Translations under genes and position numbers: made by a program
The notes under the pieces: model-generated
Told to the model about the DNA's origin: nothing
The model's database searches: none
The model's input: only the letters and a program-made list of their open reading frames with translations
Part shown: piece after piece, positions 11,754 to 63,100 of the stretch
How positions within the stretch are numbered: the first letter of the stretch is position 1
Layout: each line of letters begins with the position of its first letter
Source of the DNA: Anaeramoeba ignava BMAN
Lineage: Eukaryota > Protista > Anaeramoebae
Direction: 5' to 3'
DNA length: 64,000 bases
Assembly: GCA_028826165.1 (NCBI GenBank)
Contig: JAPDFW010000044.1
Coordinates: forward strand, 372,001-436,000

Positions 11754-14700
11754 TTAAATGAAATAAGTCTCAAGTTCATCAACAACCCATTCATCATAAA
11801 GAACCAGCTAAATAACTTCTAGCTTCATTTGTTCCTTTTTTAATTCCATTAGGTAGATTATAACTTTCACCAAAATTTGAATCACCAGATTGTAAATCAG
11901 AATATAACTCAATATCACCTATAAATATTTTAATAAAGATAAATAATTAATTTTAATAATAATTAATAATAATTTAATTTAAAATTAATTTTATTTTAAA
12001 TTGAAATAATAATATTATTGATTATATTAATATTTTGGATTATTTATTAATTTAATTGTAATTATAATAATAATTATTTATTAAATATAAATTATTTACC
12101 ATCTATTTTAATAAAGATAAATAATTAATTTTAATAATAATTAATAATAATTTAATTTAAAATTTATTTTATTTTAAATTAAAATAATAATATTATTTAT
12201 TATATTAATATTTTGGATTATTTATTAATTTAATTTTAATTATAATAATAAATATTTATTAAATATAAATTATTTACCAAACTATTTTAATAAATATAAA
12301 TAATTAATTTTTAATAATAATTAATAATAATTTAATTTAAAATTAATTTTATTTTAAATTTAAAATAATAATATTATTTATTATATTAATATTTTGGATT
12401 ATTTATTAATTTAATTTTAATTATAATAATAAATATTTATTAAATATAAATTATTTACCAAACTATTTTAATAAAAGATAAATAATTAATTTTAATAATA
12501 ATTAATAATAATTTAATTTAAAATTAATTTTATTTTAAATTGAAATAATAATATTATTTATTATATTAATATTTTGTATTATTTATTAATTTAATTTTAA
12601 TTATAATAATAAATATTTATTAAATAATAAATTATTTACCATCTATTTTAATAAAGATAAATAATTAATTTTAATAATAATTAATAATAATTTAATTTAA
12701 AATTAATTTTATTTTAAATTTAAATAATAATATTATTTATTATATTAATATTTTGAATTATTTATTAATTTAATTTTAATTATAATAATAAATATTTATT
12801 AAATATAAATTATTTACAATCTATTTTAATAAAAATAAATAATTAATTTTAATAATAATTAATAATAATTTAATTTAAAATTAATTTTATTTTAAATTGA
12901 AATAATAATATTATTTATTATATTAATATTTTGGATTATTTATTAATTTAATTTTAATTATAATAATAAATATTTATTAAATATAAATTATTTAGCTATT
13001 TTAATAAAGATAAATAATTAATTTTAATAATAATTAATAATTTAATTTAAAATTATTTTATTTTAAATTGAAATAATAATATTATTTATTATATTAATAT
13101 TTTAGATTATTTATTAATTTAATTTTAATTATAATAATAAATATTTATTAAATATAAATTATTTACTAACTATTTTAATAAAGATAAATAATTAATTTTA
13201 ATAATAATTAATAATAATTTAATTTAAAATTAATTTTATTTTAAATTTAAATAATAATATTATTTATTATATTAATATTTTGGATTATTTATTAATTTAA
13301 TTTTAATTATAATAATAAATATTTATTAAATAATAAAATTATTTATATTTACCTCCTCCAAAACTTGGACCAAAATTTAAATCATAATAAATTGCATATT
13401 CTTTCTTTTCCTTTTTGAATTGTAAACTTTTCTGAATTTCTATCTCCTTTATCATTTCTTAATGAAAAAATAAATGAATTTGAATCTGGAATATATCCAT
13501 AATCATTATTTCTATCTTCTTCTCTCCATTTTGATTTATCATTTGTCCATCCAATTTGAGTAAAACCTCCAAAAATAAAATTATCTTTTGTTTTGATAAT
13601 AACTAATGTTTTTCCTTTATTATCACAAATCGAATGCCATTTATCACAATCAAATCCATCTCTTTTTGCTGAATATCCTTTTTTCATTTTAGAAAAAAAA
13701 TCATTATCATTTATCCATTCTTGTAATTTCTTAACATATTCAATATCTTTAATAATTTCTGAATCTGAAAATTGAGGTAAAATCTTCAATAATTTATTTT
13801 CATTTTGATTTGATTCTTCTTTTTGAATTTCTTTTATTTTTTGTTTCTCTTTTTCAATTTCTTTCTCAAATGATAATTTAAGATTTTGAATTTCTTCATC
13901 TTTTTGTTTGAGAATTTTATCTTTCTTTTCATTTTCTGATTTGAGATTTTGATTTTCTTCTTCTTTCTTTTGATTTTCTTTTTCTTTCTTCTTCTTTTCA
14001 GATTCAAATGATTTGATTCTTTTATCTCTTCTTTTAATTTTCTTTTCTTTTTCTTGAATTTTTGCTTGATTTTCTTGATCTTGAATTTGAAAAATAGTTC
14101 TTTCAAAATGAATTAAAAAAGAATTTGGAAGAAAAATATCAAATTGTTTTAATTTATCAAAATCTTGTTTTGAAATTGAATCTTTATCAAATAATGAAAA
14201 AAAAGAATGAAATAATCTTTTCTTTTCATTCATTTTCTGCTCATATTTCTTTAATTTTAATGAATTAATTCTTTTTTTAATCCAATTATTTAAAAATTGA
14301 AAAAAATCAAATTGAAAAATTTCTTTTTTTTCTTGTTTAAATTGAATAAATTTGATAATTTCTTCTTTAGTTAAATTGAATAAATTCTCATTATTCTGAA
14401 TTTGGGAAAAATTTTGATTTATTAATTCAAAACATTTTATTTCAATTTCATTTGAATTTAAATTTCGATTTTGGAATAAAAATTGGAAAAATTTGAATAA
14501 TTAATTGAATTTAAAATTTTTTTTTGAATAATTTCTTTCAATAAATTTAATTTAAAATAAATTGAAATTTCCAATAATTGGATAAGATTTTCTTGATTCT
14601 CAAAAGAAATATTTCCATAATAAATATAACTCAAAATTGATTCCATTTCTTTTTTATTAAATTGATTTAAAAAAATAGAAAGAGATTCTTGCCTTAATGA

Positions 14701-14935
14701 CTCATTAAAAAAAGGAGATCTTGAAGATAAAATTGATTTATGAACTTTAATTTCAAAAGGATTTGATTTATTCTCAACAAAAATTGAAAAATCTTTAAAT
14801 GAATTTCCATTTAAAAGGTTTGAATAATCTTTAATTAAATTTTTTGTTACTTTTTTTTCTAAATTTTTCATTTCATTTTCATTTTGATTTTGATTTGCAT
14901 TTTCGAATTTGGTTATTATTATTATTATTATCCAT
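11754..14935 (-). CDS. BTB/POZ - coiled coil - TLDc protein (TLDc copy 1, type A, starts MDNNN); several +1 indels
   Basis: BTB motif DFSIFV...IKVHKSILSSRSPFF; TLDc motifs GFDCDKWHSICDNKGKTLVIIKT...FGGFT and GPSFGG. Last exon 11754-11918 encodes DIELYSD...WVVDELETYFI*. Confidence 0.85.
11919..13352 (-). repeat. Array of 8 ~180-bp GT-AG intron units separated by putative micro-exons
   Basis: Sense-strand spacers: TTA (13167-9), degenerate (~12995), ATT (12818-20), ATG (12640-2), TTTG (12459-62), TTTG (12278-81), ATG (12100-2). Confidence 0.85.
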
Positions 14936-15344
14936 TTTGTTTTTGTTTTTGTTTTTGTTTTTGTTTTTGTTTATTAAAAAAAAGGAAAAAAATGAAAAAA
15001 AAAATTAAAAAAAAAATGAATAAAAAAAGTGGATTTTGAAAATAAATAAAAATATAAAAAATAAGAATAAATTTAAATTAATAATTAATTTAATTTTCTT
15101 TTTAATTTATTATTTTAAATTAATTTATTAATAAATTATTATTATTTTTTATTAATTTTTTATTATTAAAAAAAAAGGAAAATTATTTTAATTTAATTTT
15201 TAATTTAATTTTTTTTTTTGGAATTTAAAAATTATTAATAAATTTAAATTTTAAAACAAATTTCCAAATTAATATTAATTCAATTTAATTCAAAAAAAAA
15301 GATAAAATTTTAATTTCAAAAAAATCAATTTTCAAAATATTTTT

Positions 15345-15938: not shown

Positions 15939-18900
15939 ATGGAAACTTATTCAAATTTAGAAAAACTTTCAAATGATTTAAAAAATTTATTTCAAAATCA
16001 AAATCAAAATGAAAAAGAAGAAGAAAGTTATTTTGATTTTGAAATAATTTGTGAACAAAATAAAACTTCATTTAAAACTCATAAATCAATTCTTTCTTCA
16101 AGAAGTCAATATTTTAAATCTCTTTTCAAATCAAAAATGAAAGAATATCAAGAAAATAAAATGATTCTAAAAGATGTTTCAAGTTCAATTTTATCTTCAA
16201 TTTTAAATTATTTTTATTCAGGAAAAATTGAAATTAATTTAGAAAATGCTGTTGAAATTTTAATTTTTTCATCAAAATATTTAATTGATGAATTAATTGA
16301 AATTTGTTTAAAGTTTATCAAAAACAATTTACAAATTGAAACTATTGTTGATGTTCTTAAATTATCTGAATCAATGAACTTAAATCAATTATTGAATTCT
16401 TCTTATAAATTTATTTCAAAAAATTTTGAAGAATTTATCAAAACTTCATTTTTTCTTGAACTTGAAGAAAATCATTTAAATTCAATTTTATCAAATGATT
16501 ATATTCTAATAAATGAATTCAAAATTTTCCAATCAATAATCAAATGGGGAAAACATAAATCAAATATTAATCAAGAAAAAGAAAATCAAAAACTTGAAAA
16601 AGAAGAAAAAGAAAAATTACAAGATCAAATTTCAAATATTATTGATAAAATCAGATTTATTGATTTCACAAACCAAGAACTTGAAGATATTTTGAAAGAA
16701 GATTTAATTCCAAATCAAATTTCACAAAAATTAATTCAATTTCAAATACTTCAAAATGATAAAGAAAAATTAAATGAATTCATTCAAAAAGAAAATCAAA
16801 ATCAAAATTCATTCATTTTTAAATCAAAATTTCTATCAGATTCAGAAATTATTCAAAGATAAAGAATATGTTAAGAAATTACAAGAATGGATAAATGATA
16901 ATGATTTTTTTTATAAAATGAAAAAAGGATATTCAGCAAAAAAAGATGGATTTGGTTGTGATAAATGGCATTCAATTTGTGATAATAAAGGAAAAACATT
17001 AGTTATTATCAAAACAAAACAAAATTTTATTTTTGGAGGATTTACTCAAGTTGGATGGACAAATGATAAATCAAAATGGAGAGAAAAATATAGATATAAT
17101 GATTATGGAAATATTCCAGATTCAAATTCATTTATTTTTTCATTAAGAAATGATAAAGGAGATAGAAATTCAGAAAAGTTTACAATTCAAAAAGGAAAAG
17201 AGCAAAAAGCAATTTATTATGATTTAGATATTGGTCCAAGTTTTGGAGGATGTAAATATAAATAATTTTATTATTTAATAAATATTTATTATTATAATTA
17301 AAATTAAATTAATAAATAATCCAAAATATTAATATAATAAATAATATTATTATTTTAATTTAAAATAAAATTAATTTTAAATTAAATTATTATTAATTAT
17401 TATTAAAATTAATTATTTATCTTTATTAAAATAGATTGTAAATAATTTATATTTAATAAATATTTATTATTATTATAATTAAAATTAAATTAATAAATAA
17501 ACCAAAATATTAATATAATAAATAATATTACTATTTAAATTTAAAATAAAATAAATTTTAAATTAAATTATTATTAATTATTATTAAAATTAATTATTTA
17601 TCTTATTAAAATAGCTAGTAAATAATTTATATTTAATAAATATTTATTATTATAATTAAAATTAAATTAATAAATAATCCAAAAATATTAATATAATAAA
17701 TAATATTATTATTTCAATTTAAAATAAAATTAATTTTAAATTAAATTATTATTAATTATTATTAAAATTAATTATTTATTTTTATTAAAATAGGTAGTAA
17801 ATAATTTATATTTAATAAATATTTATTATTATTATAATTAAAATTAAATTAATAAATAATCCAAAAATATTAATATAATAAATAATATTATTATTTTAAT
17901 TTAAAATAAAATTAATTTTAAATTAAATTATTATTAATTATTATTAAAATTAATTATTTATCTTTATTAAAATAGAAGGTAAATAATTTATATTTAATAA
18001 ATATTTATTATTATAATTAAAATTAAATTAATAAATAATCCAAAATATTAATATGATAAATAATATTATTATTTCAATTTAAAATAAAATTAAATTTTAA
18101 ATTAAAATTATTATTAATTATTATTAAAATTAATTATTTATCTTTATTAAAATAGATGGTAAATAATTTATATTTAATAAATATTTATTATTATAATTAA
18201 AATTAAATTAATAAATAATCCAAAATATTAATATAATAAATAATATTATTATTTCAATTTAAAATAAAATTAAATTTTAAATTAAAATTATTATTAATTA
18301 TTATTAAAATTAATTATTTATCTTTATTAAAATAGATTGGTAAATAATTTATGATTAATAAATATTTATTATTATAATTAAAATTAAATTAATAAATAAT
18401 CCAAAATATTAATATAATAAATAATATTATTATTTCAATTTAAAATAAAATAAATTTTAAATTAAATTATTATTAATTATTATTAAAATTAATTATTTAT
18501 CTTTATTAAAATAGATGGTAAATAATTTATATTTAATAAATATTTATTATTATAATTAAAATTAAATTAATAAATAATCCAAAAATATTAATATAATAAA
18601 TAATATTATTATTTCAATTTAAAATAAAATAAATTTTAAATTAAATTATTATTAATTATTATTAAAATTAATTATTTATCTTTATTAAAATAGTTAGTAA
18701 ATAATTTATATTTAATAAATAATTATTATTATAATTAAAATTAAATTAATAATTTTTTAAAATATTAATATAATAAATATTATTATTATTTAAATTTAAA
18801 ATAAAATTAATTTTAAATTAAATTATTATTAATTATTATTAAAAATTAATTATTTATCTTTATTAAAATATATTGTAAATAATTTATATTTAATAAATAT

Positions 18901-19388
18901 TTATTATTATAATTAAAATTAAATTAATAAATAATCCAAAATATTAATATAATAAATAATATTATTATTTCAATTTAAAATAAAATTAATTTTAAATTAA
19001 ATTATTATTAATTATTATTAAAATTAATTATTTATCTTTATTAAAATAGCTGGTAAATAATTTATATTTAATAAATATTTATTATTTATAATTAAAATTA
19101 AATTAATAAATAATTCAAAATATTAATATAATAAATAATATTATTATTTCAATTTAAAATAAAATTAATTTTAAATTAAATTATTATTAAAATTAATTAT
19201 TTATCTTTATTAAAATATTTATAGGTGATATTTGGATAGATTCTAATTTACAACCTGGTTATTCAAATTTTGGTGAAAATTATAATCTACCTAATGGAAT
19301 TAAATATGAAACAAATGAAGCTGAAAGTTATTTAGCTGGTTCTCCTAATAAATGGGTTGTTGATGAACTTGAGACTTATTTCATTTAA
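15939..19388 (+). CDS. BTB-BACK-TLDc protein (TLDc copy 2, type B, starts METY)
   Basis: ORFs 15939-16862 and 16774-17265 join across a 1-nt indel. BTB FKTHKSILSSRSQYF; BACK-like EFKIFQSIIKWG...IRF; TLDc follows. Donor at 17252; final exon 19225-19388 encodes DIWID...WVVDELETYFI*. Confidence 0.88.
17252..19224 (+). repeat. Array of 11 ~180-bp GT-AG intron units separated by putative micro-exons
   Basis: Spacers: ATT 17435, CTA 17615, GTA 17794, AAG 17976, ATG 18156, ATTG 18336, ATG 18515, TTA 18694, ATT 18872 (acceptor is AT instead of AG), CTG 19050. Confidence 0.9.
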
Positions 19389-22109: not shown

Positions 22110-23320
22110 TAAATTTAGATTAAATTGAAATAATTTTATATTTTATTAATAATAATAAATAATATAGATTTAATAAATATTTAATTATAAAAATATTTAA
22201 TTTAGATTAAATTGAAATAATTTTATATTTTATTAATAATAATAAATAATATAGATTTTAATAAATATTTAATTATAAAAATATTAAATTTAGATTAAAT
22301 AAATAAAAATAATAATTTTATATTTATATTTAATAAATAATAATAAATAATATAGATTTATTAAATATTTAATTATAAAAATATTAAATTTAGATTAAAT
22401 TGAAATAATTTTATATTTTATTAATAATAATAAATAATATAGATTTAATAAATATTTAATTATAAAAATATTAAATTTAAATTAAATTGAAATAATTTTA
22501 TATTTAATTATAATAATAAATAATAAATATTTAATAAATATTTAATTATATAAATATTAAAAAATTATAAAAATATTTTAATTTAAATTAAAATGAAATA
22601 ATTTTATATTTTAATTTTATATTTTTAATAAATAATAAATAATATAGATTTAATAAATATTTAATTATAAAAATATTAAATTTAAATTAAATTGAAATAA
22701 TTTTTATTTTAATTAATAATAATAAATAATATAGATTTAATAAATATTTAATTATAAAAATATTTAAATTTAAATTAAATTGAAATAATTTTATATTTTT
22801 AATAATAATAAATAATATAATTTATAAATATTTTTATAAAAATATTTAATTATAAAAATATTTTATTTTTTAAAATTAAATTGAAATATTTTTTATATTT
22901 TATAAATAATAATAAATAATATAAATTTAAATAAAATTTAAATATTTAATTATAAAAATATTAAATTTAAATTAAATTGAAATAATTTTATATTTTTATT
23001 AATAATAATAAATAATATAGATTTAATAAATATTTAATTATAAAAATATTAAATTTAGATTAAATTGAAATAATTTTATATTTTATAAATAATAATAAAT
23101 AATATAGATTTAATAAATATTTAATTATAAAAATATTTAATTTAAATTAAATTGAAATAATTTTATATTTTATAAATAATAATAAATAATATAGATTTAA
23201 TAAATATTTAATTATAAAAATATTAAAATTAAATTGAAATAATTTTATATTTTATTAATAATAATAAATAATATAGATTTAATAAATATTTAATTATAAA
23301 AATATTAAATTTAGATTGAA
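22110..23320. repeat. ~87-bp AT-rich intergenic tandem repeat, ~13 copies
   Basis: TTAGATTAAATTGAAATAATTTTATA...AATATAGATTTAATAAATATTTAATTATAAAAA recurs at ~22115, 22202, 22290 and onward. Confidence 0.85.
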
Positions 23321-23404
23321 TTGGAATGATTAATAAAGAAGGATATGAAAATTTGTAAATTAAATTTTTTCATTTTTTTCATTTTTTTCATTTTTTTTAA
23401 AATT

Positions 23405-26260: not shown

Positions 26261-32146
<5,886 letters not shown>

Positions 32147-41700: not shown

Positions 41701-44700
41701 ATCAAAAAATTCTTCAAGTGTTTCCTCATCAATTTTGATATTTAATGCTTGAACTAAAACAGAAACATATCTATAATAATCAACATCTCCTCCAGAAACA
41801 AAAGAACGTGCAATACTAATACTAATAACTGGAAGATTCACATCTTTAATTGGTTTAGGTTCAATAATAACTGGATAAATTGCTATTGGATTTTGATTAT
41901 CTAATTGAAATCTTTCCAATCGAAATTCAAATGCTTGTCCTTTTGCATCTCCTTCAATATGCAATCCAAATCCTTGCATTGTCATTAATCCTATTTCTTT
42001 TGGTGTTTTATCAATCATTGAAATGGAAAATCCTGATAAAATTACTGTGAAATTGTATTTTAATCCTGTAACTTCATTTCCTGTTAATATTTCATCATCA
42101 TTACTATCATCATTTAATTCATTGTTTTTTCTTTTTTGATCTTTTATTATTCTTCTTCTTCTTTTACTTTCTTTTTGTAAAAATTCTCGAATTTCAAGAA
42201 CTTTTGTTGAATTACGATTCAAAACTGAAAAACTAATCCATTTCTTCCCAAATGCTATTAATGGATATCTTTTCAATTTATCAAGTCCAATTTTATGTGA
42301 AAATATTGCTATTGTTTGTTCTTGAATTTTTTTCCTTCTTTCTTTTGTTAATTTCTTTTCCAAAATCTCAAATCTTAATTCTTTTTTTTCAGTCATATTT
42401 TCCCATGAATATCTTATTGTATTTTTAGGTTCAACAACTTCAGAAATTTTGGTTCCTTTCTGTTGGATTATAAAACTGAATGTTGTTTGATTATTGATTA
42501 AATAAGGTGGTCTTTCTTTGGTTTCTGGTTTAACAAAAACATAAAATATTGGTCCATTATCTTTAATTAATATATTTGCAATATAAACATCTCCTGATTT
42601 TGAACGCATTTTCAATCCAAATTCTCCAATTCCATCAACAACAAATGGATTACTCCAATTCCATTCATCTTCATCTTTATTATTATTATTATTGTTTTCA
42701 TTTAATTGATTATTTATTAAAATTTTCATTCTTAATAAATGTTGTTTTTGATTCCAAAAATATAATGGAATATAATCTTGTGATTTAATTTGTTTTTCTT
42801 TATTCTTTATTTGATTATCTTCATTTTCTGTTGAAACTTCAATATCAAAATTACATTGATTTACAATAAAAAATCTTGGTGAAAATGTTGCTGTACTTGT
42901 ACGTTTAAAAGCATCTGTTCCTCCTCTAATAGAAACTGCAATTTCAATATAATAACCTAAATATTTCATTCTTAATTCTTTGAAAGAACCAGAAGCTTCA
43001 AGATTAATATTCTGACTCCATTCACTGTTATTTGTTTTTGTTTTCATTTCTTTTTTATTAATCATTACAACTCGATTTGAAAATTTTTCAGTAATTGATT
43101 CATATTGATTTTTTCCTGATAAAATTTCTCCAACATTAGGAACAATAATATCATTATTATCTTTATCATTTTTTTCTTCAAAAATCCATTTTTTTTCATT
43201 TCCAGTTATATAATCTAAAACAATTCCTGATTTATTAAAAACAACAAATTGAGAAAAGAATGCAATTTCCCTTATTCCTTGTTTTGTGATTTGATTTTCT
43301 TTTGAAAAATATTCAAGTCTATTTTGATTATCCAAAATTGTAAGTTGCTTATTACTTTTCCTTGATTTTAAATCTAAAATTTGTTGTTCTGTATTTTGAT
43401 ATCCATCGATTCCAACAATAAAAGTAACACAATCTGGTTCAAGTAAAATATTATAAATACTTTTTCTTTCTCCTCTTAATATTATTACTTCATTTTTTTG
43501 CTTTCTTTTTTGATTTCTTATTGAAAATTGAATTGTGCTAAATAAAACATTCTCAATTATTAATGTTGGTAAAATTTCAATTTTTGAACAACTTCTTTGT
43601 GAATGAATTTTCTTTTTTATAAATACTGAAAAATAAAAATTATTTTTTCCTTTTGTATTTTGGCATTCAATTATAATTGGATTTCGTGGTAATTTTGATA
43701 AAGAAATTGATTTTTGTAAATTAATTTTAGTTTTTGATTCATTTTGTTCATTTTCATTATTATCTTCTTTGATCTCAATTTTTTTATGTTTTATTTTTCT
43801 AAATGAAAATTTCCTATCTTTTTCTTTTTTAATTTCATCTTTTTTCTTTTTCTAAATGAAAATTTTCTAATTTTTTCATTTTTAATTTCATTTTCATCTT
43901 TTTTCTTTTTTCTAAATGAAAATTTTCTAACTTTTTCATTTTCATTTTCATTTTCATCTTTTTTCTTTTTTCTAAATGAAAATTTTCTAACTTTTTCATT
44001 TTCATTTTGATTTTCATCTTTTTTCTTTTTCCTAAATGAAAATTTTCTAACTTTTTTAATTTGATTTTGATTTTGAATTGGATTTTCATTTTCATCTTTT
44101 TCTTCATCAATATAAATTTGATCATTTTCTAATGCAAATATTGATATTGAACCTTTATTTATAAATTCAAATGGAATTGAATATTCTTTTTCAGGATAAA
44201 TAATTAAAGAAGATGATTTATAATCTCCTTTTTCTGACCAAAATAAAAGTTGTAAAGGAATTGACATTTGTTGTAATTGAATATGAAGAGCAGTTTTTAT
44301 TGTTAGTTTTTTGCTTGTATCTTCACAAATATCAACAGATGCAAGTATCTTAACTTTTGTATTTTTATTTAAATGACATATAAAAATTCTTTTTTCAATT
44401 CTACTGATAAACATATTATAAGGTGTACGATTTGGATATTTTTTAAATTGAAAATTAACAATAATTGAATTTTGCATTGCTGATGTTAATTTTGTTTCAT
44501 CTTTGGTTCTTGTTATTTGAATTGCTTGAATTTCATTTGGTTTTAATAATAATTTTTTTGGTTCTGTTGAATGTTGTGTTATTTCATTATGTGTCCACCA
44601 TTCAATTAGTTCATGTGTTTGATTTTCTATCCAATATGGATTAAATGCTTGAATTTCTTTTTCAATTTTAATTTCATTTTCATTTTCTTTTTCAATTTTA

Positions 44701-47700
44701 ATTTCATTTTCATTTTCATTTTCAATTTCTTTTTCATTTTCAATTTGATTTTCAATTTTAATTTCTTTTTCATTTTTAATTTCTTTTTCAATTTGAATTT
44801 CTTTTTCAATTTTAATTTCATTTTCAATTTCAATTTGATTTTCAATTTGATTTTCAATTTTAATTTCTTTTTCATTTTCAATTTCATTTTCAATTTCATT
44901 TTTATTTTCAATTTTAATTTCATTTTCATTTTCATTTTCAATTTCTTTTTCATTTTCAATTTGATTTTCAATTTTAATTTCTTTTTCATTTTTAATTTCT
45001 TTTTCAATTTTATTTCCAATTTTAATTTCTTTTTCATTTTCAATTTGATTTTCAATTTTAATTTCTTTTTCATTTTGAATTTCATTTTCATTTTCATTTT
45101 CAATTTTAATTTCTTTTTCATTTTTAATTTCTTTTGCTTTTGAAATTGTTTCTAATAAATATTTTATAAATTCTTTAGTTATATTGATAAATGATTGTGA
45201 AACATTACAATACATATTATCATTTGAAATAATATTCATATTTATCAATTTCTCTTCAAAACTATAATCAATTTGAAATAATAAATTCCATTTTTCAATA
45301 AAATTTTCCCAAGATTCAACATTTACATTATAATAATCAATATAAAAATTAATCAATAATTTTGAATTAATTTGTTTTGTTTCTAAATTTCCATTAATTG
45401 GTAAATCAAATTTATCAATATCTAAAATAAAAAGTGGTTGAGTTCTTAAAGAATGTGAATGATTATCAATTAATCCAATTTTAAATCCTTTTGTTTGTAA
45501 ATTGAAAATGAAATTTTCTTTTCTATCAATCACTTTCTTATAATTATAATTATCATTTTCTTTTTCTTCTTGAATTTTAATTATTACTCTTTTTTGTTTA
45601 AAAATTTTGAAATGTTTTATAAATGAAAAATAAATTTGAATTATCATTTTTAAATCTTTTGTTGTAAATAATGTTGCATCAAAATTTGAAAAGGAAGAAT
45701 CTAAAACAAATTTATTATCCTTTTTCATAATATCAATCTGATTTGAAAAATTAAATGGTTGAACAATAACTCTTTTTTGAAATTTTTCTTCAGTTTCAAA
45801 TTTAAGATAGTTAACTTTAATATCTTGATCAATTATATTTATATTAATATCATCACTTGATATTATTTTCTTATAATTAAAAACAAGATTATGTTTAATT
45901 TCAAGTGCTTTCTTTTGTTTAACATATAAATTTGGGAAAAAAATAATTTTTTGATTGTGAATAAATAATTCTAAATGTAAATTTTTTTTGAATAAATTTT
46001 CATTTTCATTTTCATTTTGGTTTGAAATTTGAATTCTTTCTGGAATGAAAAAATGTATAAAATCAAATATTATTGGCCAATTTACATAAAATGTTAAGGA
46101 AATTAATGATATAACAACTTTAATTTCATTTTGTTCAGAAAATATATTTGCTTCAAATTGATTTATATTTTCTCTTAAATCTTTTTTATTTAATCCAAAA
46201 ACTTCTCGATAATATCCTTTAAAATTTGGATTTGAATTGATCATTTTGATTCTTGAAATTGTAACATCAGTAATATTTTTTGAATTTTCAAATAATTTAT
46301 CTTTTAATTTCAATTTTTCAAGTGTTAATTTGGCAAATGAATCTTCATGTAGAATAAATTCAATAATGTTGTCTTCAATTTTACTTGATTTATGAAGAAA
46401 TTCAATTTCAATTTTATCAAATGTAATTTCAAATTCTGCTTTAATTAAATTTAAATCTTTGTTTTCTTCTTTTTTATCATCTTGAATTTTTTCTTCAATA
46501 TCTTTAATTTCTTGTTGGATTATTTTTAATTTTTCTTTGAAATTATTCTTTGTAAATGTTTTGGAAATTTGTTCAAATAATTTTCTACTAATAACTAACT
46601 TGATTATTGGGAAATGTGTTGATAAAATGAATTTAGGTTTCTTTTCATTCACTTCTTTTTGTAATAGAAAAGGAAAATGGTTAATTTGAAAAGAAAATGA
46701 TGTTTCTGAAATGATTGTATTATATTCTGTTTCTTTCTTGTTAATTTTTCCAATTTCAAATTTCAAATCATTAAACTCTGAAAAATAATTAATTGAAATT
46801 TCTTGTTCATTAACAAAATTAAAATTATTTTTGAAATTGATTTGTTTAAATTTTCCAATTATAAAAGAATTTGATTTAAAATGTTTTGGAATGATAATAT
46901 CAAAATTATGAAGATTAATATCAAAAAGTAGAAATTCTTTTTCTTCATTGATTTTAGATTGTACTTTTTTTGCTTTAATCATTAATTCTGTTACAAAACT
47001 TTCAAAATTAATTTCTGATTGAAAATAAGCACTTTGTTCAATAATTTTGCCAAAATATTCTTCAATTTCTTGAAAAAAATTGAATAAAATTATTGTTTGA
47101 AGATTATGGATATCAATTTTAAAAATTTTTGAATTTGTAAATTTGTTCTGATCTTGATTATTATTATTGTTTGAATAAATTTCATATTTAATAAATCTTT
47201 TTGGATCAAGAGATTTAATAATATCTGGATATTTTGAATCAATAAAAGTTAAATCAATCAATCTAAAATTCCCAATACTTCCATCTATTCTCTTTTCATT
47301 TTTGAGATTAATAACATTTGATTCAATATTTTCAAGAATAATTTTGGAAACTGATGATTCTTTTGTTAATAATGTTATTGATATTTGATTAATTTTGGAA
47401 ACTATTTTAAAACTTTTATCATTCTTCTCAAAATTATCATTTAAATTTAAAAAACTTGAAATTGAACTTGAAATTGAAATTGAATTGGAAGTTGAAATAA
47501 TTTTCTTTTTTTCTTGATTATTTGCAAAATTTTTGAAATAAAAATTTATTAATTCACAAAGAGTTTCTTGATTAAGATAAATATCTAATGTATTAAATCC
47601 CATTTGTAAATCATAAGTAAATCCTGTATAATTTTTAGATGATTCTTCATATTGATATCCTTTAATAAAAAATGCTTCTTTTTCTGGTGATAATATCATA

Positions 47701-50546
47701 AATTCATTTTGATTAGAATATAAATCTTCAACTTGAAAAGTTTCTAATTTTAATTCAAAATTTTTATGAAAAGAATATTGAGAAAAATTCATTTCTAAAT
47801 TCCCTAAATTAAATTTAAGTAAATTATAAATATTTTCAGGTTTTTCATCTTCTTGAAGTAAAATGGAAATTTTTGGAATTGTTAAATTAATCTTCATTTT
47901 TTGCCAATTAGGGAAAATATTTGCTTTTTTTAAATCATTAAATTCTATAATTTGTGGGAATTTTGCTCCTGTTTTTGTTTTTAATGTTTTTATAATTTTT
48001 TGTATATTAATCCATTTTGTTGAAGTAATTTCTAAATTAATTTCTGGTAATGATCCTTTTAATCTATTTTTTTTTTTGAATTTAAAAATTAGAATTAAAT
48101 TTTAAATGATATTTTTTATTATTATTTTACTTAAATCTGTCAAATTGATTTATATTTTTGGGAAATATTGAAACTTCTAATAAAAGTGAAATATCTATAT
48201 CAGGAAGTATTTGATATTCTTTGTTTGTAATTTGATCAAAATAATATTGTTCAAATGGGTAAATGAAGGAATTGACTTTTGATATATTAATTTCAAAAAT
48301 ATCAAATATATTATCCTCAATATTTTCAATATCATTTTTTTTCAAATTATCACTTATTTTTTGAGATATATAATCAACATTTTCTGAATTTAATAAATTT
48401 TTTGGATCACTTTTAATTGATAAATCACCAAGATTTGCAACAAACAAAGCTCCATCTTTATTTTGTTTGATTTTTTCAGGAAATAACAATAAACAAGATC
48501 CAATTTGAATATCAAGTTTGAATTTTTTATGGTTTTGAATTGCATAAGAAAGAGCTTTTTGACTTATTATTGTTATTTGATTTTTTGTAAATTGCTGAAT
48601 TTCATCTGTTCTTATTTTTCGAAATTTCTTGAAAAATTGGATAAATTTGGAGATTAAAATTGGATTATAAACAACTTTCAAAGGTTTCATCTTCATATTC
48701 AAATCAATTTCATTATTATATTTTTTAAATTCAATTATGGATTCAAAAAAGTTTTCTTGTTCATCTTGTTTTTGCATTGGAGATATTATCAAAGGATATT
48801 TTGTTTTATGAGTAAAATGATCAATAATTGTGAAATTTTTGAGAATTGATTCAATTTTTTGATATCCATGACTATATAAAAATTTGATTAATGCTTGATC
48901 AAAACTAATTTCTGAAATTTTTGAATAAATTTCTGATTCTGAATCTAATTGAGAAATGACAACTTCTCCTTTGGAAATTAAAAAAGAAAATTTAAAAGAG
49001 AAGGATTTCTTTGAATTATCAAAACCAAGAGAATTAAACAATTCTATAATCTCTTCATTATTAAGATTAACTTGAACTTTTTTCACTTCATCTGAATCTT
49101 CAAATGATTCAATTCTTGTAAACCATCTAATTAAAAAATTCCTTTTTGAAAGTTCTTCTTGAATTTCCTTCTTTTTTTTCAAAATGATTTTTTGTTGTTC
49201 ATTAACTGTTTTTTGATATTCTTTTTCTGCAATTTTACGAAAGAATATAATATCTTTCACATTTAAAATCTCTTCAAAATGATTGATTTGTTCTTGTAAT
49301 TCTTTCTCTATTTCCTTGTTTTTTCCTTTTTCTAATTTGAGTTTTTGTTTCCATAATTTTATATATTTATTTCTTGAAATTGTTGAAATGATTATTAAAT
49401 ATTGATTTTGTTTTTTATATTCTTTTTTTAAAGGATGAGAAGCACATTTAAAAATGAATTTCCACCATTTTTGATTAATTTTTTCTTCATTTTGAATTGG
49501 ATTTGTTTCTGGTTTTGAATATTTTCTAAACTAAATATTCAATAAAAAAAATAATAAAATAATTTAAATTATTCTTTTTTTTCTTTGATTTAAAATTTAC
49601 TTTTGTTCTTCTAATATTAAAAAGAAATTTATTAGAAGTTTGAATTATTGAAATTAATTGATTTTGTTCTAATTGAATAAATAATTTCTGAATTAATTCA
49701 AATTGAATATCAATTAAAGGTTTTTCTTCATTTAAATCTAATTTTAATTTTATAAATCCTTTGGGAATTTTTAAAACTTCATTTGAATTCCAACAAATTT
49801 TGAAATTTTGGAAAGTTAATAATTTATAAAGAATTTTTGGTTCAATTTCAGGAATTGAAGGATTCCAATTTGAATCACAACTTTGAATACTAAATTGATC
49901 TAAAAAAATTTCAAATTCAAATCCATCTTCAAATTCAAATTTAATGTGAATATTTTCAATACTAATTTGTGTATTGTTAATAATTTGTTTTGTTATATTT
50001 TTAATAAAATCTTCATTTTCTTCTTCATTTGAATTAATTTCTTTTTTCATAATTTCAAATCTTTCAATTTTTTCTTTTTTTTCTTTTTGAATCAATTCTT
50101 TTTGAATTTTGGAATCTCTCTAAAAAAATGTTTTAAAATAAATATTATTTAAATTTATTTAATAAAAGATGGTTTTTTTTTATAAACCTTTGAATCAAGA
50201 AAAGAAGTAAAAATCATTTCAATTTTATCAATTATTATTATTGTTGGTTTTGAAGAAAGATGTTTCCAAGGAATTTGAATTTGAAGATTTCCAATAAATC
50301 CTTTTTTAAAATTAATTTATTTTTTTTAACAAAATTTAATTAAAAATTTTTATTTTATTTTATTTTTTTACCATTTTTTAATTCAAATGGTATTTTAGAT
50401 TTTTTAAAACCATCAGGATTTAATTCTATATTTGTTAAAGAAATATCTCCATTCCAAATTGAAAATTTTAAATCATCTTGATTAAATCCTTTAATAAATT
50501 TGTTAAAATATGTGTTTAAAATTATTTTTATAATTTTTTCAAACAT
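38794..50546 (-). CDS. VPS13: VPS13 family lipid-transfer protein, multi-exon
   Basis: Chorein-N MFEKIIKIILNTYFNKFIKGF...SIWNGDISLTNIEL; VAB region FSPRFFIVN and PPYLINNQT...YSWE; FQLDNQ; C-terminal ATG2_C-like Gly-rich amphipathic region GVSGLVTQPIKGAKKSG...GRVRLPRYF. Confidence 0.92.
39040..40500. repeat. Intronic (ATATCCAA)n octamer satellite in the last VPS13 intron (39009-40516)
   Basis: Directly visible. Confidence 0.9.
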
Positions 50547-51786: not shown

Positions 51787-54312
51787 ATGGATAATAATAA
51801 ATAAATTAATAAAAAAAAATAAATCAAAAAAGAAAATTAAATTAAAAATTAATTTAAATTTAAATTATTTTCAAAATAAATTTCAAAATCAAAAATATTT
51901 TCAAAATCAAAATTCAATTTTTCATTTTTAAAAACAAAATCAAAATCAAAATCAAAATCAAAATCAAAATCAAAATCAAAATCAAAATCAAAATCAAAAT
52001 CAAAATCAAAATCATAATCAAATTCAAAATCAAAATCAAATTCAAATTCAAAATCAAAATCAAAATCAAAATCAAATTCAAATTCAAAATCAAAATCAAT
52101 TACAAAAGATTTTTTCAGATTCAGAAATTATTCAAGATATTGAATATGTTAAGAAATTACAAGAATGGATAAATGATAATGATTTTTTTTATAAAATGAA
52201 AAAAGGATTTTCAACAAAAATAGATGGATTTGATTCTAAAAATTGGCATTCAATTTGTGATGATAAAGGAAAAACATTAGTTATTATCAAAACAAAAGAA
52301 AATTTTATTTTTGGAGGATTTACTCAAGTTGGATGGACAAATGATACATCAAAATGGAGTGAAGATAATTATGGTTATGTATTTATTCCAGATTCAAATG
52401 CATTTATTTTTTCATTAAGAAATGATAAAAGAGATCGAAAACCAGAAAAGTTTACAATTCAAAAAGGAGAAGAAAAACATGCACTTCTTTATGATTTAAA
52501 TCATGGTCCAATTTTCGGAGGAGGTAAATATAAATAATTTATATTTAATAAATAATTATTATTATAATTAAAATTAAATTAATAAATAATCCAAAATATT
52601 AATATAATAAATAATATTATTATTTCAATTTAAAATAAAATTAATTTTAAATTAAATTATTATTAATTATTATTAAAATTAATTATTTATTTTTATTAAA
52701 ATAGATGGTAAATAAATTATATTTAATAAATATTTATTATTATAATTAAAATTAAATTAATAAATAATCCAAAATATTAATATAATAAATAATATTATTA
52801 TTTCAATTTAAAATAAAATTAATTTTAAATTAAATTATTATTAATTATTATTAAAATTAATCATTTATTTTTATTAAAATAGATTGTAAATAATTTATAT
52901 TTAATAAATATTTATTATTATAATTAAAATTAAATTAATAAATAATCTAAAATATTAATATAATTAATAATATCATTATTTCAATTTAAAATAAAATTAA
53001 TTTTAAATTAAATTATTATTAATTATTATTAAAATTAATTATTTATCTTTATTTAAATAGATTGTAAATAATTTATTATTTAATAAATATTTATTATTAT
53101 AATTAAAATTAAATTAATAAATAATCTAAAAATATTAATATAATAAATAATATTATTATTTCAATTTAAAATTAATTTAATTTTAAATTAAATTATTATT
53201 AATTATTATTAAAATTAATTATTTATATTTATTAAAATAGATGGTAAATAATTTATATTTAATAAATATTTATTATTTATAATTAAAATTAAATTAATAA
53301 ATAATCCAAAAATATTAATATAATCAATAATATTATTATTTCAATTTAAAATAAAATTAATTTTAAATTAAATTATTATTAATTATTATTAAAATTAATT
53401 ATTTATCTTTATTAAAATAGATGGTAAATAAATTATATTTAATAAATATTTATTATTATAATTAAAATTAAATTAATAAATAATCTAAAATATTAATATA
53501 ATAAATAATATTATTATTTTAATCTAAAATAAAATTAATTTTAAATTAAATTATTATTAATTATTATTAAAATTAATTATTTATATTTTTATTAAAATAG
53601 TTGGTAAATAATTTATATTTAATAAATATTTATTATTATAATTAAAATTAAATTAATAAATAATCTAAAATATTAATATAATAAATAATATTATTATTTC
53701 AATTTAAAATAAAAAATTAATTTTAAATTAAATTATTATTAATTATTATTAAAAATTAATTATTTATTTTTATTAAAATAGATTGTAAATAATTTTATAT
53801 TTAATAAATATTTATTTTATTATAATTAAAATTAAATTAATAAATAATCAAAAATATTAATATAATAAATAATATTATTATTTTTAATTTAAAATAAAAT
53901 TAATTTTAAATTAAATTATTATTAATTATTATTAAAATTAATTATTTATCTTTATTTAAAATAGCTGGTAAATAATTTATATTTAATAAATATTTATTAT
54001 TATAATTAAAATTAAATTAATAAATAATCCAAAATATTAATATAATAAATAATATTATTATTTCAATTTAAAATAAAATTAATTTTAAATTAAATTATTA
54101 TTAATTATTATTAAAATTAATTATTTATCTTTATTAAAATATTTATAGGTGATATTTGGATAAATTCTGATTTACAATCTGGTTATTCAGATTTTGGTTT
54201 TACTTATAATCTACCTAATGGAATTAAAAAATACACAAATGAAGCTAGAAGTTATTTAGCTGGTTCTTATGATAAATGGATTGTTGATGAACTTGAGACT
54301 TATTTCATTTAA
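51787..54312 (+). CDS. TLDc protein (copy 3); type-A 5' flank and MDNNN start but no BTB domain; 5' part low-complexity or frameshifted
   Basis: TLDc ORF 52196-52523; donor at 52524; final exon 54149-54312 encodes DIWINSD...WIVDELETYFI*. Confidence 0.7.
52524..54148 (+). repeat. Array of 9 ~180-bp GT-AG intron units separated by 3-nt putative micro-exons
   Basis: Spacers: ATG 52705, ATT 52883, ATT 53061, ATG 53241, ATG 53421, TTG 53601, ATT 53782, CTG 53965. Confidence 0.92.
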
Positions 54313-54923
54313 AAACTATTTTTCATTTTTTTTTCAAAATTTAATTCAATTTTAATTTACTTTCAATCAAATTAAATTCTTCAAATCAATAAATAAGAAA
54401 CAAATCTAATTTTAAATAATTTAATTTTAATTTAAAAATATTATTAAAAAGAAGATTAAATTGAAAAAAATGAAAATCAAAAATATATAAAAATTGAAAA
54501 TAGAAATTAATTATTATTAATTGTAAAATATTTTATAAAATATAAAATAAGAAACAAATCAATTATAATTTATTATTAAAAAATTATTTAATAAATAAAT
54601 AAATTGAAAATATTTTTAAATAATAAAATATTTAAATATAAAACAATAAATTATTATTTTAATAATTGAATTAAATATTAAATTATATTTTTAAATTAAT
54701 TTATAAATTAAATATTAAATTAAATCTATTCTTATTTTTTATATTTATATGTTAAATATTTAAATAATAAAATATTTAAATCTAAAACATTAAATTATTA
54801 TTTTAATAATAAAATTAAATATTAAATTATATTTTTAAATTGATTTATAAATTAAATATTAAATTAAATCTATTTTCATTTTTTCATTTTTTTCATTTTT
54901 TTCTTTTCAAATTTTTATTTAAA

Positions 54924-57900
54924 ATGGAAACTTATTTAAATTTAGAAAAACTTTCAAATGATTTAAAAAATTTATTTCAAAATCAAAATCAAAATGAAAA
55001 TGAAGATGAAAGTTATTTTGATTTTGAAATAATTTGTGAACAAAACAAAACTTCATTTAAAACTCATAAATCAATTCTTTCTTCAAGAAGTCAATATTTT
55101 AAATCTCTTTTCAAATCAAAAATGAAAGAATATCAAGAAAATAAATTAATTCTAAAAGATGTTTCAAGTTCAATTCTATCTTCAATTTTAAATTATTTTT
55201 ATTCAGGAAAAATTGAAATTAATTTAGAAAATGCAATAGAAATTTTAATTTTTTCATCAAAATATTTAATTGATGAATTAACTGAAATTTGTTTAAATTT
55301 TATCAAAAACAATTTACAAATTGAAACTATTGTTGATGTTCTTAAATTATCTGAATCAATGAACTTAAATCAATTATTGAATTCTTCTTATAAATTTATT
55401 TCAGAAAATTTTGAAGAATTTATTAAAACTCCTTTTTTTCTTGAACTTGAAGAAAATCATTTAAATTCAATTTTATCAAATGATTATATTCCAATAAATG
55501 AATTTAAAATTTTCCAATCAATAATAAAATGGGGAAAACATAAATCAAATATTAATCAAGAAAAAGAAAATCAAAAACTTGAAAAAAAGAAAAAGAAAAA
55601 TTACAAGATAAAATTTCAAATATTATTGATAAAATCAGATTTATTGATTTCACAAACCACGAACTTGAAGATATTTTGAAAGAAGATATAATTCCAAATC
55701 AAATTTCACAAAAATTAATTCAATTTCAAATACTTCAAAATGATAAAGAAAAATTAAATGAATTAAACGAATTAATTCAAAAAGAAAATCAAAATCAAAA
55801 TTCATTCATTTTTAAATCAAAATTTCTATCAGATTCAGAAATTATTCAAGATATTGAATATATTAAGAAATTACAAGAATGGATAAATGATAATGATTTT
55901 TTTTCTAAAATGAAAAAAGGATTTTCAGCAAAAAGAGATGGATTTGATTGTGATAAATGGCATTCAATTTGTGATGATAAAGGAAAAACATTAGTTATTA
56001 TCAAAACAAAAGATAATTTTATTTTTGGAGGATTTACTCAAGTTGGATGGACAAATGATACATCAAAATGGAGAGAAGAAGATAGAAATGATGATTATGG
56101 AAATATTCCAGATTCAAATGCATTTATTTTTTCATTAAGAAATGATAAAGAATATAGAAAACCAGAAAAGTTTACAATTCAAAAAGGAGAAGAAAAACAT
56201 GCACTTCTTTATGATTTAAATCATGGTCCAATTTTTGGAGGATGTAAATATAAATAATTTTATTATTTAATAAATATTTATTATTATAATTAAAATTAAA
56301 TTAATAAATAATACAAAATATTAATATAATAAATATTATTATTATTTTAATTTAAAATAAAATTAATTTTAAATTAAATTATTATTAATTATTATTAAAA
56401 TTAATTATTTATATTTATTAAAATAGTTGGTAAATAATTTATATTTAATAAATATTTATTAATATAATTAAAATTAAATTAATAAATAATCCAAAATATT
56501 AATATAATCAATATTATTATTATTTTAAATTTAAAATAAAATTAATTTTAAATTAAATTATTATTAATTATTATTAAAATTAATTATTTATTTTTATTAA
56601 AATAGTTTGTAAATAATTTATATTTAATAAATATTTATTATTATAATTAAAAATAAAATTAATAAATAATCCAAAATATTAATATAATTAATAATATTAT
56701 TATTTCAATTTAAAATAAAATTAATTTTAAATTAAATTATTATTAATTATTATTAAAATTAATTATTTATTTTTATTAAAATAGTTTGTAAATAATTTAT
56801 ATTTAATAAATAATTATTATTATAATTAAAATTAAATTAATAAATAATCTAAAAATATTAATATAATAAATAATATTATTATTTCAATTTAAAAATAAAA
56901 TTAATTTTTAAATTAAATTATTATTAATTATTATTAAAATTAATTATTTATATTTATTAAAATAGCTGGTAAATAATTTATATTTAATAAATATTTATTA
57001 TTATAATTAAAATTAAATTAATAAATAATCCAAAATATTAATATAATAAATAATATTATTATTTCAATTTAAAATAAAATTAATTTTAAATTAAATTATT
57101 ATTAATTATTATTAAAATTAATTATTTATATTTATTAAAATAGATGGTAAATAATTTATATTTAATAAATATTTATTATTATAATTAAAATTAAATTAAT
57201 AAATAATCCAAAAATATTAATATAATAAATAATATTATTATTTCAATTTAAAATAAAATTAATTTTAAATTAAATTATTATTAATTATTATTAAAATTAA
57301 TTTTTTATTTTTATTAAAATAGATGGTAAATAATTTATATTTAATAAATATTTATTAATATAATTAAAATTAAATTAATAAATAATCCAAAATATTAATA
57401 TAATAAATAATATTATTTTTAAATTTAAAATAAAATTAATTTTAAATTAAATTATTATTAATTATTATTAAAATTAATTATTTATTTTTATTAAAAATAG
57501 ATTGTAAATAATTTATATTTAATAAATATTTATTATTATAATTAAAATAAAATTAATAAATAATCCAAAATATTAATATAATAAATAATATTATTATTTA
57601 AATTTAAAATAAAATTAATTTTTAAATTAAATTATTATTAATTATTATTAAAATTAATTATTTATCTTTATTAAAATAGATAGTAAATAATTAATATTTA
57701 ATAAATATTTATTATTATAATTAAAAATAAAATTAATAAATAATCCAAAATATTAATATAATAAATAATATTATTATTTCAATTTAAAATAAAATTAATT
57801 TTAAATTAAATTATTATTAATTATCAAAATTAATTATTTATTTTTATTAAAATAGTTTGTAAATAATTAATATTTAATAAATATTTATTATTATAATTAA

Positions 57901-58381
57901 AATTAAATTAATAAATAATCCAAAATATTAATATAATAAATAATATTATTATTTCAATTTAAAATAAAATTAATTTTAAATTAAATTATTATTAATTATT
58001 ATTAAAATTAATTATTTATCTTTATTTAAATAGTTGGTAAATAATTTATATTTAATAAATATTTATTATTATAATTAAAATTAAATTAATAAATAATCCA
58101 AAATATTAATATAATAAATAATATTATTATTTGAATTTAAAATAAAATTAATTTTAAATTAAATTATTATTAATTATTATTAAAATTAATTATTTATATT
58201 TATTAAAATATTTATAGGTGATATTGAGTTAAATTCTGATTTACAATCTGGTTATTCAAATTTTGGTTTTAGTTATAATCTACCTAATGGAATGAAAGAT
58301 CCAACAAATGAAGCTGAAAGTTATTTAGCTGGTTCTTATGATGAATGGGTTGTTGATGAACTTGAGACTTATTTCATTTAA
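54924..58381 (+). CDS. BTB-BACK-TLDc protein (copy 4, type B), close paralog of 15939-19388
   Basis: METYLNLEKLSNDL start; indel near 55590; donor at 56244; final exon 58218-58381. Confidence 0.88.
56244..58217 (+). repeat. Array of 11 ~180-bp GT-AG intron units separated by 3-nt putative micro-exons
   Basis: Spacers: TTG 56427, TTT 56606, TTT 56785, CTG 56966, ATG 57144, ATG 57323, ATT 57501, ATA 57680, TTT 57856, TTG 58034. Confidence 0.92.
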
Positions 58382-60159: not shown

Positions 60160-63100
60160 TTAAAATTTAGTAAAAGGATCTTTTTTTGCTAAAACTAAAA
60201 ATGGATGAGTATAACTGATATAACCTCTAATTCTTTCCTGATAAATTAAAATAGAAAGGATGCATTTAATTTCATTATCACAAATATCAACACCAATAAT
60301 ATTCAAACCTTTTTGAATATCTTCAATAGGAATTTTTGTATTTTGAATTATTGAATGAAATTTCTTCATAAAGTTTCTGAAAACAAGAATTCTTATTGAT
60401 TGAAAAATTACAAAAATTCCTTTTTTTAAAAATAAAGTTTGATATTTTTGAATTTCTTGATCATAAAAATTAACATTTCCTTTTATAAAAGAATGAACAA
60501 TTTGAATATAAAATCCAAGATCATATTTTTGAAGAAGAGAATCACTTGGAATTTTACCAAAATATAAATTTACAGGAACTAAATAGAAAAGAATCATTTT
60601 CAAATGTTTTGGATATTTTTTAGAACAATTTTGGAAAGCATAATTAAGATCTTCTTGAGCCTTTTTTTTTTTATAGGAATTTAAATATTTTATTAAATTT
60701 AAATATTTTATTGAATTTAAATATTTTATTAAATTTAAATATTTTATTTGAATTGAAATATTTTATTGAAATTTAAATATTTTATTGAAATATTATATTA
60801 AATTTAAATATTTTATTAAATTTAAATATTTTATTAAATTTAAATATTTTATTAAATTTAAATATTTTATTAAATTTAAATATTTTATTAAATTTAAATA
60901 TTTTATTTAATTTAAATATTTTATTAAATTAAATTATTTTATGGAATTTAAATATTTTATTTGGAATTGAAATATTTTATTAAATTTAAATATTTTATTA
61001 AATTTAAATATTTTATTAAATTTAAATATTTTATTGAATATTTTATTAAATTTAAATATTTTATTGAATATTTTATTAAATTTAAATATTTTATTGGAAT
61101 TTAAATATTTTATTAAATTTAAATATTTTATTAAATTTAAATATTTTATTAAATTTAAATATTTTATTGAATTTAAATATTTTATTAAATTTAAATATTT
61201 TATTAAATTAAAATATTTTATTAAATTTAAATATTTTATTAAATTTAAAATATTTTATTAAATTTAAATATTTTATTAAATTTAAATATTTTATTAAATT
61301 TAAATATTTTATTAAATTTAAATATTTTATTAAAATTTAAAATTTTAATTTAAAATTTTATTAAATTTAAAATTTTTATTTGGATTGGAAAATATTTTTA
61401 TTAAATTTAAATATTTTATTGAATTTAAATATTTTATTGAATTTAAATATTTTATTAAATTTAAATATTTTATTAAATTTAAATATTTTATTAAATTTAA
61501 ATATTTTATTGAATTTAAATATTTTATTGAATTTAAATATTTTATTGAATTTAAATATTTTATTAAATTTAAATATTTTATAAAATATTTTATTAAATTT
61601 AAATATTAAATTAAATTATTTTTATGGAATTGAAATATTTTATTGGAATTGAAATATTTTATTAAATTTAAATATTTTATTGGAATTTAAATATTTTATT
61701 AAATTTAAATATTTTATTAAATTTAAATATTTTATTAAATTTAAATATTTTATTAAATTTAAATATTTTATTGAATTGAAATATTTTATTGGAATTGAAA
61801 TATTTTATTGAAATTTAAATATTTTATTGAAATATTATATTAAATTTAAATATTTTATTAAATTTAAATATTATATTAAATTTAAATATTTTATTGAAAT
61901 ATTATATTAAATTTAAATATTTTATTAAATTTAAATATTTTATTAAATTTAAATATTTTATTAAATTTAAATATTTTATTAAATTTAAATATTTTATTAA
62001 ATTGAAATATTTTATTAAATTTAAATATTTTATTGAATTTAAATATTTTATTGAATTGAAATATTTTATTGGAATATTTTATTAAATTTAAATATTTTAT
62101 TGGAATTTAAATATTTTATTGGATTTAAATATTTTATTAAATTTAAATATTTTATTGAATTTAAATATTTTATTGAATTTAAATATTTTATTGAATTTAA
62201 ATATTTTATTAAATTTAAATATTTTATTAAATTTAAATATTTTATTAAATTTAAATATTTTATTAAATTTAAATATTTTATTGAATTTAAATATTTTATT
62301 AAATTTAAATATTTTATAAAATATTTTATTGAATTGAAATATTTTATTAAATTTAAATATTTTATAAAATATTTTATTGAATTGAAATATTTTATTAAAT
62401 TTAAATATTTTATTAAATTTAAATATTTTATTAAATTTAAATATTTTATTAAATTTAAATATTTTATTAAATTTAAAATATTTTATTAAATTTAAATATT
62501 TTTATTGAATTTAAATATTTTATTAAATTTAAATATTTTATTAAATTTAAATATTATATTTAATTGAAATATTTTATTAAATTTAAATATTTTATTAAAT
62601 TTAAATATTTTATTGGATTTAAATATTTTATTGAATTTAAATATTTTATTGAATTTAAATATTTTATTTGGAATTAAAATATTTTATTAAATTTAAATAT
62701 TTTATTAAATTTAAATATTTTATTAAATTTAAATATTTTATTGAATTTAAATATTTTATTTGAATTTAAATATTTTATTAAATTTAAATATTTTATTAAA
62801 TTTAAATATTTTATTGAATTTAAATATTTTATTAAATTGAATTAAATTATTTGAATTAAATTATTTGAATTAAATTATTTGAATTAAAATATTTTATGGA
62901 ATATTTTATGGATTTGTTAAAATATACAAGTTGATATTCTTCACTTAAAAGATGCATTCTACCAACATAATATTTATAAGTAACTTTTTCATAAATTGGA
63001 AAATTTTCAAAATTTGGAAAAGAAGAATCTTCAACAACATTAATAAAATGACCACAATTATGAAGTTTATTTGTGAAAAAATAAATTCTAAATAATTCTA

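Follow-up and report, generated by a model that had tools for sequence, protein, structure and literature searches.

Some 40 related TLDc genes of Anaeramoeba ignava seem to build one variable protein loop from three-base exons

Introduction

Recursive-splicing sites are zero-length exons at which AG and GT lie adjacent inside a long intron, and introners are families of near-identical introns dispersed in unrelated genes. In Schistosoma, the MEGs combine exons of 6-81 nt (mostly 15 nt) with introns of 0.1-5 kb, encode secreted proteins with a signal peptide and have been shown to produce isoforms (PMC10526429). An exon of only 3 nt can be spliced in or skipped, as in mouse Ncam and Drosophila TnT (PMC8042270), and short flanking introns have been linked to the inclusion of microexons (PMC8378409). 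At the protein level, F-box and MATH-BTB proteins of nematodes form large families of Cullin adaptors with fast-changing substrate-binding domains, whose variation comes from point mutation and gene birth and death (summarised in PMC4334554). The TLDc domain is likewise a protein-interaction domain (PMC8608904).

Here, we analyse TLDc genes of the anaerobic amoeba A. ignava BMAN that carry tandem arrays of near-identical intron units separated by variable three-base spacers. Four of them lie in the window, the whole 64-kb stretch of DNA under study at G000:C35:372001-436000, and were the subject of an earlier note.

Results

Four arrays in the window

The four arrays are found at the positions given in the earlier note, with 8, 11, 9 and 11 units of ~175-183 nt in copies 1-4, respectively (Table 1). 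The reported number of exact AG-NNN-GT junctions, 30 out of 35, is also correct; the remainder consists of three 4-nt spacers (ATTG once, TTTG twice) and two broken junctions, one with the acceptor changed from AG to AT and one with the donor deleted. Each unit had been described as running from GTAAAT to AAATAG. The units do start with GTAAAT and end with AATAG, but the first donor and the last acceptor differ from the internal ones in having longer forms, which are also present in a single-intron paralog (L047). The GTAAAT and ATAG ends resemble those of the other introns of the window. As a negative control we used the other intronic satellites of the window, where AG-N-GT islands are absent, so the array junctions are not a product of chance. 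These control satellites are long, built of 87-bp and shorter units (22107-23331, 24051-25169, 36500-38200 and 60700-62800), and contain no internal splice-site pairs.

All arrays share one phase-1 insertion site, after GPxFG(G) and before the D of the last exon, as had been proposed, and splicing in all spacers would yield the very peptides predicted for copy 3 (GG-DDYYDVDS-GDIW) and copy 4 (GG-FVFSDDDYIF-GDIE). The proteins of these two copies are 85% identical and their spacer strings are unrelated. In the NCBI models each array is treated as one intron, and model P0008 fuses exon A of copy 3 directly to exon B. The upstream frameshifts of copies 1, 2 and 4 and the 4-nt spacers of copies 1 and 2 may be due either to homopolymer errors of Nanopore sequencing or to genuine decay.

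Table 1. Parts of the four TLDc genes in the window (positions in the window; three-base exons as predicted)
Feature	Position	Strand	Remarks
Copy 1 exon A, BTB-coiled coil-TLDc	13353..14936	-	frameshifts near 14480 and 13410
Copy 1 array, 8 units	11919..13352	-	4 exact 3-nt exons, two 4-nt spacers, one donor-deleted junction
Copy 1 last TLDc exon	11755..11918	-	
Copy 2 exon A, BTB-BACK-TLDc	15939..17251	+	one frameshift near 16860
Copy 2 array, 11 units	17252..19224	+	8 exact 3-nt exons, 4-nt spacer (18336), acceptor mutated ~18870
Copy 2 last TLDc exon	19225..19388	+	
Copy 3 TLDc exon A	52196..52523	+	annotated start to phase-1 donor after GPIFGG
Copy 3 array	52524..54148	+	9 GT-AG introns (175-181 nt), 8 three-base exons
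Copy 3 three-base exons	52705, 52883, 53061, 53241, 53421, 53601, 53782, 53965	+	
Copy 3 last TLDc exon	54149..54312	+	G-DIW... to stop
Copy 4 exon A, BTB-BACK-linker-TLDc	54924..56243	+	one frameshift near poly-A run ~55590
Copy 4 array	56244..58217	+	11 introns, 10 three-base exons
Copy 4 three-base exons	56427, 56606, 56785, 56966, 57144, 57323, 57501, 57680, 57856, 58034	+	
Copy 4 last TLDc exon	58218..58381	+	

Elsewhere in the window, always on the minus strand, we recognised by eye a putative DEAD-box helicase (4467-6284), a putative SH3 protein (8183-8956), a pyruvate:ferredoxin oxidoreductase-like gene (26261-29176, with further exons to ~31900) whose GC content of 34-42% is far above its surroundings, a putative ankyrin-repeat gene (34219-38300) and a VPS13-like gene (40494-50095).

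Extent across the genome

We scanned the assembly, which comprises 42,843,398 bases in 147 contigs and is Nanopore-based, with polishing by Racon, Nanopolish and Pilon. The intron unit gave at least 825 matches genome-wide, and the array-end and array-start motifs occurred 41 and 36 times, respectively, and never in a reversed control. There are ~40 such arrays in (BTB-BACK-)TLDc genes of A. ignava, in a genome with at least 150 TLDc copies; the set that we parsed consists of 29 arrays of more than one intron plus a gene with a single intron. Complete arrays have between 1 and 32 introns, a range that lends good, indirect support to the idea that the arrays expand and contract; the insertion point is invariably the phase-1 site that follows GPxFG(G). 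In a phylogenetic tree, all 26 array genes group in a single supported clade that also includes 8 intronless genes, the branching order having too little resolution to order events.

Four tandem TLDc genes on contig C1 (L056 and L057; G000:C1:1.057-1.076 Mb) have 16-32 short, individually diverged introns and are the best targets for RNA mapping because their introns can be distinguished from each other. About 18-21 kb before the window, an array (L042:562-3819) contains a run of AAT/AAC triplets that leads to two in-order stops, as well as 4- and 5-nt spacers, and is possibly a pseudogene. Partly decayed arrays with several broken junctions are present at L044:4028-5600, L051:1-2330 and L053:2673-3300; in the first, exon A carries a frameshift as well, and the last is truncated by other sequence.

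The spacers have properties of coding exons

The 29 arrays that we parsed contain 300 spacers, of which 287 have a length of 3 nt; most of the remaining ones differ from common triplets in the length of a homopolymer, as a Nanopore-based assembly would lead one to expect. Our parser required AG and GT, so failures were counted separately, as double-length introns, giving at most 10 broken junctions in ~223 (up to 2.2% per G). Variation at four C sites within the introns amounts to 16-48%, a contrast with the splice-site G that is indicative only, since the C-site variants are shared and are not independent events. In the arrays of contig C1, the introns have decayed to ~54-163 nt, with 57 different lengths and no bias towards multiples of three, and still 85 of 87 spacers measure 3 nt and both ends are intact in nearly every intron. 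Thus, tandem copying alone is insufficient to account for the spacer length. Overall, array introns range from 54 to 183 nt, compared to a median of 102, a mode of 76 and a minimum of 35 nt for the introns of the genome.

The variation is concentrated in the spacers: introns within arrays differ by 2.2% per site, and spacer positions 1, 2 and 3 by 60, 29 and 67%, respectively, which in phase 1 correspond to codon position 2, the wobble position and codon position 1. The middle (wobble) base is T in 86% of spacers, and the family prefers T for D, Y, F, N, I and V, with a matching codon use (GAT, TAT and TTT at 96-99%). For Lys and Glu, the arrays together use AAG/GAG in 12 cases and the preferred AAA/GAA in only two, which counts against a coding role; A is rare as the middle base (9 of 287). 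The vocabulary amounts to 26 triplets, three of which make up half of the spacers, and the arrays encode mainly D (64 of 301), Y (47), S (24), N (24) and F (23). Between two orthologous arrays on C1 the introns differ by ~1.6%, while 3 of 16 exons and 10% of spacer bases have changed, all exon changes being non-synonymous and including, twice, a double change between Tyr and Trp. As a control we used a satellite that is related to the intron and not spliced; of its 19 copies, 16 share an identical junction. Among complete arrays, 17 of 26 are fully 3-nt and stop-free, and 9 of 26 have a frame-breaking spacer in this assembly.

A search with the last exon gave no match, none of the hits searched was an RNA-derived protein, and the protein hits with a source shown were all NCBI genome models; the JGI contigs yielded only one unrelated intronless TLDc gene. 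Spacer length, wobble pattern, junction retention and the satellite control together give good indirect support to the claim that the spacers are selected 3-nt exons, and from these features we regard the triplets as very probably coding.

In-order inclusion and subsets

When spacers are joined in order, stops arise in 2 of 301 joins against 5.5 expected (P=0.03), both in L042; leaving out this array, which also has two frame-breaking spacers, gives 0 against 2.9 expected (P=0.02), an exclusion made post hoc. These P values are optimistic since the units are not independent. There is no such depletion in skip joins: T-ending exons precede stop-risk exons in 34 of 105 cases (32%), against a background of 33%, and further stop counts were 2 against 2.7 and 2 against 2.5 expected. 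In addition, spacer letters are coupled across the intron at distance 1 (P=0.004, or 0.015 without identical neighbours); the reverse control was not significant, and one test at distance 3 also was significant. Taken together, the stop and coupling tests lean, with low power, towards in-order inclusion as the selected product, and mostly full inclusion is favoured, by weak statistics, because stops are depleted in in-order joins and not in skip joins.

The earlier note had instead proposed combinatorial skipping, in which coding triplets would be assembled into a large mix of ordered subsets from each gene and much of the diversity would come from splicing. The skip-join counts do not support this, and short introns (genome mode 76 nt) favour intron definition and use of the nearest acceptor, such that stepwise intron removal seems plausible in the light of the reported link between short introns and microexon inclusion (PMC8378409). 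The test has low power, since selection on each rare subset would be weak. Moreover, any subset of symmetric exons stays in frame, the splice sites are identical and thus give the spliceosome nothing to choose by, every subset of copies 3 and 4 is stop-free (120 and 567 distinct peptides, respectively), only 1.5% of skip joins contain stops, very short exons are skipped readily (PMC8378409) and the Schistosoma MEGs provide a precedent. On balance, we consider extensive skipping somewhat unlikely.

The array site in the TLDc domain

Matches to the TLDc family (Pfam PF07534) reach 49-59 bits against a cut-off of 24.5. Copies 2 and 4 have a BTB-BACK-TLDc architecture (E ~1e-22 for BTB and ~1e-14 for BACK), copy 1 has a BTB without BACK, and copy 3 is annotated as TLDc only. 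AlphaFold predicts a confident TLDc fold (pLDDT ~96) with the array site at the tip of a beta-hairpin, and Foldseek relates it to Skywalker, NCOA7 and OXR2 (E ~5e-9, probability 1.0; matches 6r82, 8ar6 and 4acj), the array site aligning to the glycine-rich turn of the Skywalker TLDc. Intronless paralogs carry 1-28 residues at the hairpin tip, rich in G, Y, N and S. In the model of an intronless paralog whose natural loop has 10 residues, the hairpin is simply extended (pLDDT ~96), and the array-less form given by NCBI is also predicted to fold well as a normal TLDc. In the flanking exons pN exceeds pS (0.14-0.15 compared to 0.09-0.11), with pS lowered by strong codon bias.

A cluster of intronless TLDc genes (L014, L019-L021 and L035; G000:C13:545-586 kb) has Y/N/E/Q-rich loops of 9-28 residues at the same hairpin tip. 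A second loop of variable length, in exon A after GFTQVGW (window 56055-56105 and paralogs), varies by ordinary indels and includes a long Ser/Asp insert in L009. An A. ignava-like protein of 1281 aa (P0080) contains six TLDc matches in tandem, of which one has a loop that is different and longer.

Origin of the arrays

Introns diverge by 3.0% within arrays and by 3.2% between arrays on different contigs, and we found no linkage between spacers and flanking intron variants. From this, from the unrelated spacer strings of copies 3 and 4 and from the L050 locus described below, we infer that the introns often act as homology arms, both in unequal crossover and in ectopic conversion. Neighbouring spacers are identical in only 41 of 236 cases, and paralogous arrays have long identical spacer runs in common (13 of 16 units).

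A 150-bp satellite that has the same body as the intron unit and no AG/GT lies downstream of intronless TLDc genes (L050, L032, L029 and L036). At one locus (L050:2150-5790; G000:C82, ~1.0456-1.0493 Mb) this satellite, which is not spliced, is fused to a terminal acceptor and to an orphan last exon of a TLDc gene. The common body and end motif suggest a shared origin, with the intron possibly derived from the satellite. A search for signs that the loops of intronless paralogs are retro-copies of spliced arrays gave no clear signature.

Discussion

Our analysis indicates that one variable loop of the protein is apparently encoded triplet by triplet in ~40 related genes. Every unit would be a genuine spliceosomal intron, and every spacer a genuine exon, symmetric and in phase 1. 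The introns would be removed one by one by intron definition, so most mRNAs would keep most or all triplets in order, and the triplets would add a finger of up to ~30 residues, rich in D, Y, N, F and S, at the tip of the TLDc beta-hairpin. Diversity would be made mainly in the DNA, where near-identical introns may provide the homology for gene conversion and unequal crossover, both within and between the ~40 loci; single codons could thus be duplicated, deleted or swapped with the frame intact, and new amino acids would be kept by selection. Judging from the sequence patterns, this combination of mostly full inclusion with shuffling at the DNA level is the account we favour, with modest confidence.

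Were each array instead one long intron, removed whole or stepwise without the triplets, the units would be an intronic satellite and the triplets non-coding. This is how the NCBI annotation treats the arrays. Intronic satellites abound in the genome, a related satellite is located on the 3' side of intronless TLDc genes, tandem copying alone yields AG/GT and the 3-nt length in young arrays, and the short protein form is predicted to have a normal TLDc fold. Nevertheless, we consider a single long intron distinctly unlikely, as it leaves unexplained the 3-nt length kept through many intron deletions, the retention of the splice-site G, the ~30-fold excess variation at two non-synonymous positions and the near-invariant junction of the non-spliced satellite. 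A selfish, introner-like element that inserts beside itself, leaving triplets as target-site footprints tolerated in a permissive loop and not adaptive, would fit the near-identical introns at many loci and the related satellite elsewhere in the genome. This too we hold to be very improbable: the unit has no terminal inverted repeats, no fold (z = -0.09) and no Rfam match, MITE-type features such as inverted repeats and target-site duplication are absent from it, neighbouring spacers are seldom identical, and every splice-junction array read, 29 in the parsed set, sits at one homologous TLDc site. That the spacer variation is an artefact of assembly and polishing is hardly credible, since errors in the polished Nanopore assembly, to which frameshifts in nearby coding DNA may point, would scatter over the unit (2% divergence) and not focus on two of the three spacer bases, would not give paralogous arrays their long common spacer runs, and could account for the 2- and 4-nt spacers only.

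The domain order of the BTB-BACK array proteins predicts Cul3 binding and substrate delivery. By analogy, a role as Cullin-3 substrate adaptors is probable, with a binding surface that has diversified and is possibly directed against foreign proteins. A two-level diversification of receptors, with codon shuffling in the DNA of ~40 loci and a choice of subsets by the spliceosome giving hundreds of loop variants per gene per cell, on ubiquitin-ligase adaptors that recognise foreign proteins in a single-celled eukaryote, seems to us unlikely. Should the triplets reach the mRNA, this would be exon shuffling at the smallest scale in a free-living protist, allowing frame-safe, codon-by-codon change of the length and sequence of one loop. 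The spliceosome would have to cope with up to ~30 consecutive 3-nt exons, making the arrays a natural system for testing intron definition and the order of splicing, and ~40 public protein models would be without their most variable part.

Our literature searches found nothing linking Anaeramoeba with TLDc, and in the passages searched, the A. ignava BMAN genome paper does not mention the arrays (PMC11550330). The statement that no equivalent has been described agrees with the searchable literature, which covers few subscription journals. The likeness to CRISPR that had been drawn extends to the repeat-spacer layout and not to acquired spacers, these being 3 nt long and drawn from 26 triplets; unlike in CRISPR, there is no sign of acquired foreign spacers, a guide RNA or Cas genes, and the repeat has no Rfam match. 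As in recursive splicing, AG/GT pairs adjoin inside a long intron, and as in introners, the introns are near-identical. Recursive splicing itself was rejected, 0-nt spacers being found at 0 of 300 junctions.

Regarding the proteins, the array genes share the fold of the TLDc family (PF07534; OXR1/NCOA7/TBC1D24/mEAK7), but whereas animals and yeast have few, conserved members that bind the V-ATPase, A. ignava has its many copies, often fused to BTB-BACK and with variable loops. Nematode F-box and MATH-BTB adaptors offer a model of how the array proteins might work, with a different binding domain and no micro-exon cassette. The 3-nt microexons of Ncam and TnT are isolated and flanked by unrelated introns, in contrast to the hypervariable chains of up to ~30 in A. 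ignava. The arrays work most like the Schistosoma MEGs, with which they have in common runs of very short exons, mostly of 3n length, a multigene family and a tie to protein variation, but they depart from MEGs in the features that define these: the exons are 3 nt long, the introns are clones of ~175 nt that are 97-98% identical, and the micro-exons would build only one loop of a folded BTB-TLDc domain protein, not most of a secreted one.
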